Assembly: GCF_006345805.1 (NCBI RefSeq) | Contig: NC_043006.1 | Coordinates: 12,214,001-12,278,000 of the forward strand | Reading direction: 5' to 3' | DNA length: 64,000 nucleotides | DNA from: Octopus sinensis | Lineage: Eukaryota | Shown here: piece by piece, positions 31,088 to 31,575 of the stretch | Layout of the letters: each line of letters starts with the position of its first letter | Position numbering within the stretch: position 1 is the stretch's first letter | Position numbers and translations under genes: made by a program | Notes under the pieces: model-generated | Databases searched by the model: none | Told to the model about the DNA's origin: nothing | What the model saw: the letters and a program-made list of their open reading frames with translations, nothing else

Positions 31088-31575
31088 AACAGGACGAGAA
31101 TGGAAGGTATTGTGACAGGGTCCTTCGTCTCCAGCCCCGGTTTGCTATATTGCTTCAGATATCATCTGAAGAGCAAAGTGGGGTTGGAGAGGAAGACCCT
31201 GCCACCGAGTGAATGTGAAAAACGATGGAAGGAAATGATGGGAAAGGTGGGTATTACGAACCCAGCTTAATCATCGAAAAAGGAAAAATTAGTTGCTGGG
31301 CCTTATAGGCTGCGGGTTCAAATTTTAAACCTGCATTTCTCCCCTTTTTCATTTTAGCATATGTTATGTTTTCTATTTTTATGAAAAAAAAAACACACAC
31401 ACAAAAGTTCTCGCTGTAAAGGCAAAAGTAAGCCAATTATTCGTTAAGCCAAGTTTTCGTTTATGTCATATTATACCTAAAATTTTAAGTCTCATTCGAA
31501 CTCATATAACATTCTTTGTATTTGTCTGTCTTGTTATGTCCCTATCTATGTAAGATCGCATGATCATAATAAAGA
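31088..31575 (+). mobile_element. Second Tx1/L1-clade LINE family, extreme 3' end
   Basis: RTRMEGIVTGSFVSSPGLLYCFRYHLKSKVGLERKTLPPSECEKRW aligns with WTRLKGLETNTFLSGQSLINFFKYHLKKKVRVERQVLSSECFKKRW of the 54601 element. The 3' UTR ends in AATAAAG at 31568-31574. Confidence 0.8.

Follow-up and report, generated by a model that had tools for sequence, protein, structure and literature searches.

By which long interspersed nuclear element (LINE) is a short interspersed nuclear element (SINE) copied, if it ends not in poly(A) but in a specific sequence that it shares with L1-type LINEs? This question is raised by a stretch of 64,000 nucleotides of the Octopus sinensis genome (RefSeq assembly GCF_006345805.1, contig NC_043006.1, positions 12,214,001 to 12,278,000 of the forward strand; hereafter the window), which contains copies of a short, non-coding, dispersed SINE of ~240 bp and of two LINE families, F2 and an element associated with (GATA)n microsatellites. 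That a SINE and a LINE have their tails in common is textbook knowledge in the L2, CR1, and RTE clades, and recognition of the "relaxed" type, based on poly(A), is modelled on L1-type elements. Our analysis revealed that the octopus SINE has a specific, non-poly(A) 3′ tail in common with LINEs of the L1 superclade, as had been proposed from the letters of the window. We consider it probable (roughly 0.7) that the SINE is mobilised in trans by the ORF2 protein of a non-target-specific LINE of this group, which would recognise the tail.

The tails that a sequence-only reading had quoted for F2, the GATA-associated LINE (GATA-LINE), and the SINE are found in the window at or near the places it gave, and the stems that it drew upstream of AATAAA (GATC/GATC, AGCC/GGCT, and GCCC/GGGC) are all present. 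The F2 copy (31091..31580, + strand) is 5′-truncated and decayed and consists of 3′ untranslated region (UTR) and tail. Its borders were drawn from alignments of genome copies, more than 40 of which were scored; these match the query 31000-31580 from position 92 to 579-581 at 73-87% identity, which places the start at ~31091 and the end at 31578-31580. The F2 tail (31521..31579, + strand) comprises T-rich TTGTC blocks, TCTATGT at 31545-31551, a hairpin, AT, AATAAAGA at 31568-31575, and TTT. Its letters from 31521 to 31575 read TTTGTCTGTCTTGTTATGTCCCTATCTATGTAA-GATC-GCAT-GATC-ATAATAAAGA, with the hairpin at 31554-31565 and its arms at 31554-31557 and 31562-31565.

The GATA-LINE is represented by three copies. 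The longest (54601..55519, + strand) is 5′-truncated and retains the C-terminus of ORF2 with a zf-RVT motif, the 3′ UTR, and the tail (55474-55519), in which AGCC-CTGTGT-GGCT is followed by AATAAAGAAACATA. A short 3′ fragment (54150..54325, + strand; tail 54280-54325) lies within (TATC)n and has the stem AGTC/GGCT with one U.G pair. The third copy (13029..13880, − strand; tail ~13029-13090) has (TATC)n on both sides, and a 1-nt insertion breaks its hairpin. All three tails abut (TCTA)n, and a search with a window copy retrieved GATA-LINE copies of 95-98% identity from the genome. Every window copy sits amid long (TATC)n/(TACC)n/(CATC)n tracts (12980-14060 and 54320-55700), and one microsatellite tract carries two of the copies in tandem (54150-54325 and 54601-55519).

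SINE copies lie on both strands. On the forward strand, the copy at 51862..52119 ends in a tail at 52062-52119 with the hairpin GCCC-CTGGT-GGGT at 52095-52107, and a second, 5′-truncated unit follows it in tandem (52113-52303; tail 52246-52303). On the reverse strand, the copy at 34667..34895 has its tail at 34669-34726 and ends ...GGGCAATAAAGAAATA without poly(A), the near full-length copy at 63313..63547 has its tail at 63315-63372 with GCCC-CTTGT-GGGT followed by AGTAAAGAAATA, and the copy at 28147..28370 has its tail at 28149-28206 with the hairpin GCCC-CGTGT-GGGC. In this last copy, the TCCTTGT block of the tail has grown to ~5 TCCTTGTATG repeats (28180-28250). A 22-nt core pattern of the tail has nine matches in the window, against none expected, and the SINE tail has 155,804 matches with at most two mismatches genome-wide, on all chromosomes. 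Tail variants include AGTAAA in place of AATAAA. By rough estimate, SINE copies are 81-100% identical to the window query.

To place the LINEs, we scanned the genome (G000; 2.72 Gb in 13,516 contigs, the window being C10:12214001-12278000) with the Pfam model zf-RVT. The scan returned 24,042 candidates; the 150 that were scored all lay above the cut-off, and 50 loci were fetched (loci throughout are numbered with the prefix L). At least 12 LINE families were separated from these loci and named A, B, B2, C, D, E, F2, F2b, F2c, G, H, I, and GATA. Where the ORF2 copies extend sufficiently far upstream, they encode an endonuclease, a reverse transcriptase (RT), and a zf-RVT motif. Full GATA-LINE copies (L026, L027) contain Exo_endo_phos, RVT_1, and zf-RVT, as do the longer F2 copies L029-L032, which extend several kilobases farther upstream and have a zf-CCHC in ORF1; families A, B, and E carry RVT_1 and zf-RVT within one ORF. 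ORF1 is of the CCHC zinc-knuckle type and not the mammalian-type Transposase_22; the zf-CCHC match is above the Pfam cut-off in F2 (L032; E 6.5e-6) and below it in the GATA-LINE (E 0.0029). The ORF2 proteins of A, GATA, and F2 share 58% amino-acid identity, and the best solved relative is human L1 ORF2p, which is colinear over residues 10-842, covering endonuclease and RT (E 1.9e-51). Judged from these sequences, membership of the group in the L1 superclade is well supported. The label Tx1-like is supported by domain architecture, target-specific insertion, and published RepeatMasker classes; named homologues are uninformative for the clade, one distant coral match being auto-named "Transposon TX1". 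In the published octopus annotation (O. vulgaris), L1-Tx1 is the only L1-type class among recently active LINEs.

All LINE families of this group end alike. T-rich, TTGTCC-like blocks are followed by TCTATGT, 1-3 nt, a hairpin with a 4-bp stem and a loop of 4-6 nt, 0-2 nt, and AATAAAGAAA(TA), which gives a tail of 45-58 nt. SINE and LINE share the terminus ...AATAAAGAAA(T/C)A, directly after which unrelated or target-specific flank begins. Copies of both element types stop 5-6 nt past AATAAA without transduced flank, and none of the more than 70 LINE and SINE tails collected carries poly(A). The tail is also conserved above the rest of the 3′ UTR. Between families, identity in the last 50 nt is 52-84%, as against 37-62% in the remaining 3′ UTR, which is about the level of unrelated sequence in the same alignment; only the close pairs B/B2 (0.70) and H/G (0.68) exceed this range. 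For the last 300 nt of ORF2, the corresponding values are 53-70%, with 0.89 for B/B2 and 0.75 for H/G.

Tails of this kind are T-rich and of low complexity, and a resemblance between them could arise by chance among T-rich 3′ UTRs. We therefore aligned the 58-nt SINE tail locally with the LINE tails, using 2000 dinucleotide shuffles for each, and took as a real-sequence control 765 windows of 64 nt from the T-rich 3′ UTRs of the same LINEs, the top score of which was 20. The F2 window copy scored 38 (z 10.5), a value that none of the 2000 shuffles reached (mean 13.7), so that the similarity claimed for this family passed strongly. The GATA-LINE scored 35 (z ~9; 0/2000 shuffles), and 21 when AATAAAGAAA was removed (z 2.6; 50/2000 shuffles); its similarity to the SINE passed only modestly, and it is a weaker pair than had been implied. 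The two LINEs of the window had been named as the partners of the SINE; both tails are indeed similar to that of the SINE, but families A (L048), D (L049), H (L075), and I (L068) match far better, with scores of 65, 64, 62, and 58, respectively (z 16-20). No shuffle and none of the 765 real UTR windows reached the scores of A, D, H, I, the F2 window copy, or the GATA-LINE.

Family D (L049) and the SINE share an exact 29-nt identity, TTGTCTGTCCTTGTTTGTCCCCTCTATGT (z 18), and families H (L075), A (L048), and I (L068) have ...TGTCCCCTCTATGTT.GCCCCTTGTGGGYAATAA in common with the SINE (z 18-20). In a blastn-short search of 346 kb, the SINE tail matched LINE tails with E-values of 5.6e-11 (D), 2.2e-10 (H), and others ranging to 1e-5, and the SINE copies in the same 346 kb showed no other LINE tail type. 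A covariance model, R1, with seeds from SINE tails and the GCCC-type LINE tails of families A, C, G, H, and I, recovered the tails of the GATA-LINE, which were not among the seeds, at E ~0.002-0.02. With z-scores of 8-20 against dinucleotide shuffles overall, chance similarity is already refuted by the shuffle and real-window controls, the low z of the GATA pair without AATAAAGAAA being the one comparison that leans towards it.

Both major branches of the ORF2 tree carry the tail, which is therefore ancestral to the LINE group; the SINE most probably took its tail from a LINE, and the transfer did not run in the opposite direction. A related LINE of Argonauta hians (L086:6560-6810, GCA_054771915.1), whose ORF2 is 55% identical, has the end GTGGCTAATAAAGAAA followed by (TCTA)n. 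This Argonauta end, ...GCGCCCATGTGGCTAATAAAGAAA, combines the terminal block with a microsatellite target, as in the octopus GATA-LINE, and has a stem of 3 bp. A distant LINE in tandem copies on an ENA contig (L083) was considered as a further bearer of the tail and rejected, as it has no recognisable tail of this type.

Between the conserved blocks, the stem sequence differs among the families while pairing is kept. The stem is GCCC/GGGC in the SINE and family H, GCCC/GGGU in A, I, C, and many SINE copies, GCUC/GGGC in G, ACCU/AGGU in D (L051), GAUC/GAUC in F2, F2b, and F2c, GAUU/AAUC in E and B2, AAUU/AAUU in B, and AGCC/GGCU in the GATA-LINE. A positional rule (4 bp with at most one G.U, a loop of 4-6 nt, and 0-2 nt before AATAAA) is satisfied in 14 of 17 lineages and in 67 of 76 collected copies, whereas in the UTRs of the same LINEs it holds at 7.6% of positions, or 3.6% if only Watson-Crick pairs are allowed. 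The G.U wobbles fit a sense-strand RNA.

The ORF2 tree gives these changes an order. In the F2/E/B clade, the ancestral form is GAUC, and the C-G to U-A change that turns it into GAUU/AAUC arises twice, on the B/B2 branch and in E; the G-C to A-U change from GAUU to AAUU/AAUU arises once, in B. Loops vary freely in this clade, and it contains at least 2-3 compensatory double changes and no uncompensated stem change; by a rough estimate made by hand, each compensatory event has p ~0.01. Pair counts were made only on the 17 rows with a loop of 5 nt (alignment A5), because MAFFT misaligns hairpins whose loops vary between 4 and 6 nt and spacers between 0 and 2 nt (alignments A1 and A4), and the alignment to R1 (A3) is useless for this purpose, as it treats the hairpins of F2, E, B, and D as insertions. 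Within these rows, each of the four pairs varies in both arms, and pairing holds in 100% of cells, compared with 27-50% in slid controls. The covarying stem proposed earlier has moderate support, in that pairing is kept while the stem bases of the families change; AGCC/GGCT, a register shift, is no covariation in the classical sense. For 12 of 18 tails, RNAfold also proposed that TCTATGT pairs with ATAAAGA in a basal stem, which we rejected: although 82% of its cells pair, against 46-56% in slid controls, it shows no covariation and is indistinguishable from two conserved blocks.

We regard a mechanism in two stages as the most probable. The SINE would first have captured the tail of a LINE from this group. 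The ORF2 protein of a non-target-specific family (A-, H-, or D-like) would then reverse-transcribe the SINE RNA in trans; it would recognise the tail itself, a "stringent" 3′-end recognition, and start cDNA synthesis at the AAAGAAAUA end. The common stop of both element types shortly after AATAAA, lacking poly(A) and transduced flank, implies that reverse transcription starts at a defined site in the tail, and such a start site is a signature of stringent recognition. Among the candidate drivers, the GATA family and several others are unlikely, because their insertion is target-specific, unlike that of the dispersed SINE. The flanks of family A are diverse, as expected of dispersed insertion, and this family thereby fits the SINE better than the target-specific families; its copies are 93-98% identical pairwise, and those of family D 82%, both by rough estimate.

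Several points weigh against this reading. We found no LINE copy with the complete SINE tail, by a genome pattern that is not selective against SINE deletion variants, and the SINE tail is a composite in its affinities: its 5′ half is nearest D, and its hairpin is nearest H, A, and I. AATAAA could serve mainly as an RNA polymerase II (Pol II) polyadenylation signal. Further objections concern the hairpin. With only 4 bp, the stem is thermodynamically weak; hairpins occur in 46-83% of shuffles for the AU-only stems of families E and B, and the folding z-scores of 18 tails range from -3.2 to +0.6 (mean ~-0.9) and are mostly non-significant. RNAalifold predicted zero pairs, hence no consensus structure, on the unfitted MAFFT alignment A1. 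The loop-5 rows were picked for having a hairpin, and the GATA stem AGCC/GGCT derives from the GCCC type by a 1-nt shift of register through two changes in the 3′ arm, not by two-sided change. Finally, a perfect 4-bp stem is missing in three lineages, D-L049, X-L071, and the Argonauta copy, each of them represented by one decayed copy with 3 bp or no stem.

The objections to the hairpin lead to an alternative in which tail and trans-mobilisation are real, but recognition is by primary sequence (TCTATGT and AATAAAGAAA) or by the terminal bases, the hairpin being incidental. The TCTATGT and AATAAAGAAA blocks are nearly invariant, and the intervening 14-18 nt vary freely, as this alternative would have it. 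We nevertheless judge it unlikely, since the stem is found at its position in far more lineages than the background of the same UTRs would give, and since stem changes in F2/E/B are all compensated next to free loops, with slid controls much lower. Overall, the evidence for the hairpin, which comes from comparison of families, is moderate, and we lean somewhat towards a functional role of the apical hairpin.

A second alternative takes up the polyadenylation signal. In it, the AATAAAGAAA module and the hairpin are a 3′-processing or termination signal of the LINE transcript, which the SINE inherited by template switching, and the SINE now depends for its movement on a different LINE clade or on relaxed recognition. 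AATAAA is the canonical poly(A) signal, and octopus genomes have active RTE, CR1, and Dong-R4 LINEs according to published work. Against this, copies that end within a few nucleotides of AATAAA with neither poly(A) nor transduced flank point to a defined internal start of cDNA synthesis, and the SINE copies in the 346 kb searched carry no LINE tail of another type. Furthermore, the SINE keeps the whole tail module, the AGTAAA variant included, in more than 150,000 copies, and it is presumably transcribed by RNA polymerase III (Pol III), to judge from its putative tRNA-type structure. Pol III needs no poly(A) signal. We therefore regard this second alternative as very improbable, and trans-mobilisation by tail recognition as the better account.

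A B-box-like GAGTTCAAATTCC is visible in the SINE and may belong to a tRNA-like head with an internal Pol III promoter; ARAGORN found no tRNA in the window. In the published annotation, the main SINE classes of octopus are tRNA-Core and tRNA-Deu, neither of which is linked to the SINE described here. Target-site duplications of the window SINE copies are ambiguous by eye. The 3′ two-thirds of the SINE (query 68-253) also occur in head-to-tail arrays with a period of 184-186 bp, in the window (51862-52303) and elsewhere in the genome (C4:149050771-149051518 and C1:8970295-8971820). Units in these arrays end ...AGTAAAGAAATA, and the next unit starts GGTATTTCGTCT; the arrays may represent a SINE-derived satellite or repeated template jumping. 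A second, distinct SINE family in the window (27070-27400 and 56470-56820) contains an internal TTTGTGTGTCTGTGTTTGTCCCC that resembles the T-rich part of the LINE tail and runs ~100 nt past it to a different 3′ end. This internal sequence may be the relic of an earlier tail.

Several LINE families are tied to particular sites. The GATA family lies inside (TCTA)n in ~20 copies, and within each of families B, C, and E the 3′ flank is constant. Copies of family E (L063, L066, L078, and L082) have the common 3′ flank AGAAGCGACACCTACTGG..., and in one of them a 3′ fragment of 18S rRNA follows ~320 nt downstream (L078:1355-1515), which suggests that family E may be a LINE specific for ribosomal DNA. 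At another locus (L053, 2162-2391; C15:29050931-29054074), an E-like tail ends at 2227 and a full-length U1 small nuclear RNA (snRNA) starts at 2228 (Rfam RF00003, 125 bits, model 1-166); the junction reflects site-specific insertion at U1 position -1/+1, or else it is chimeric. Rfam scans of the window and 32 loci matched the tails to no RNA family and identified only U1 and the 18S fragment, both in flanks. In two regions, zf-RVT matches are evenly spaced, at 3573 bp (C9:76607599-76623724) and ~5.7 kb (C3:72501693-72529006); such tandem arrays of LINE copies are expected from insertion into a tandemly repeated target. In the window, the ORFs outside the LINE copies encode no transposon domains.

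Site preferences of this kind are known from the Tx1 group, whose LINEs encode an apurinic/apyrimidinic (AP) endonuclease, an RT, and a C-terminal CCHC motif and insert into microsatellites, snRNA and rRNA genes, or other repeats. The octopus targets, namely (GATA)n, the 18S-linked flank, and the U1 junction, are of the same sort, and family A, which looks dispersed, differs from the target-specific members of the group. We know of no common SINE tail or conserved terminal hairpin in Tx1-group LINEs, the target-specific members of which include Tx1L, Keno, Kibi, Koshi, and Mutsu (Kojima and Fujiwara 2004, as cited in PMC4494074).

A SINE that is inferred to be driven by Tx1-group LINEs has been described in crocodilians, namely SINEU, with Tx1-Mar as the mobilising element (Kojima 2015, PMC4494074). 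In that pair, the link is a common target preference (Mariner-N4_AMi), and the tails are poly(A), with no common LINE tail (PMC4494074); in the octopus, in contrast, the link is a specific common tail, and the SINE is dispersed. The paradigm for tail recognition is provided by UnaSINE1/UnaL2 of eel and ZfL2-1/ZfL2-2 of zebrafish (L2 clade; Kajikawa and Okada 2002; Hayashi et al. 2014, PMC4176376). There, as proposed here, a SINE borrows the tail of a LINE, and a conserved 3′ stem-loop, different from family to family, is bound by ORF2p. These systems belong to another LINE clade, have longer stems and short terminal repeats at the 3′ end, and are experimentally proven.

The closest precedents come from plants and algae. 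A survey that covered more than 800 LINEs of the L1 clade reported L1 tails on no more than three SINEs (Ohshima 2012, PMC3472496; review PMC3747384), namely maize ZmSINE2 and ZmSINE3, which pair with LINE1-1_ZM of the monocot L1 lineage, and Chlamydomonas SINEX-3_CR, which pairs with L1-1_CR (PMC3472496). As in the octopus, an L1-clade LINE and a SINE share their 3′ end in these pairs (there over ~50-80 nt), and the monocot L1 lineage has a hairpin, to which that of the octopus group may correspond, whose stem bases vary with compensatory changes and whose neighbouring bases are conserved. The sharing was read as a case of stringent recognition in the L1 clade, which is otherwise "relaxed" (PMC3472496; PMC3747384). 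The hosts of these pairs are a plant and a green alga, and the SINEX-3_CR/L1-1_CR pair ends in poly(A) repeats, whereas the octopus case involves an animal host, target-specific Tx1-like LINEs, a 4-bp stem, and a AATAAAGAAA end without poly(A). The rarity of such pairs, which the sequence-only reading had assumed, is borne out by the literature that we searched, in which maize and Chlamydomonas are the only cases and tail recognition between SINEs and L1-type LINEs is so far reported only in plants and algae. Most SINEs are unclassified in octopus annotations, and no LINE partner for octopus SINEs is named in the octopus-repeat, mollusc, and SINE-body literature searched (Repbase reports not covered).

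As a tentative proposal, for which we see slightly less than even chances, the octopus may provide the first animal instance of stringent, tail-specific recognition in the L1 superclade, in the form of a Tx1-like radiation with a modular tail, in which two invariant blocks enclose a family-specific 4-bp hairpin "address" and one version of which was hijacked by a very abundant SINE. If true, the hypothesis of an "ancestral stringent L1" would come to include animals: stringent recognition would be ancestral for L1/Tx1, with a relaxation that took place separately in mammals and in flowering plants. The tail, a compact module of ~45 nt, would also lend itself to studies of template choice by L1-type ORF2p. 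For the octopus itself, the proposal would point to a candidate LINE group as the driver of one large SINE family, and with it of part of the octopus-specific SINE expansion.
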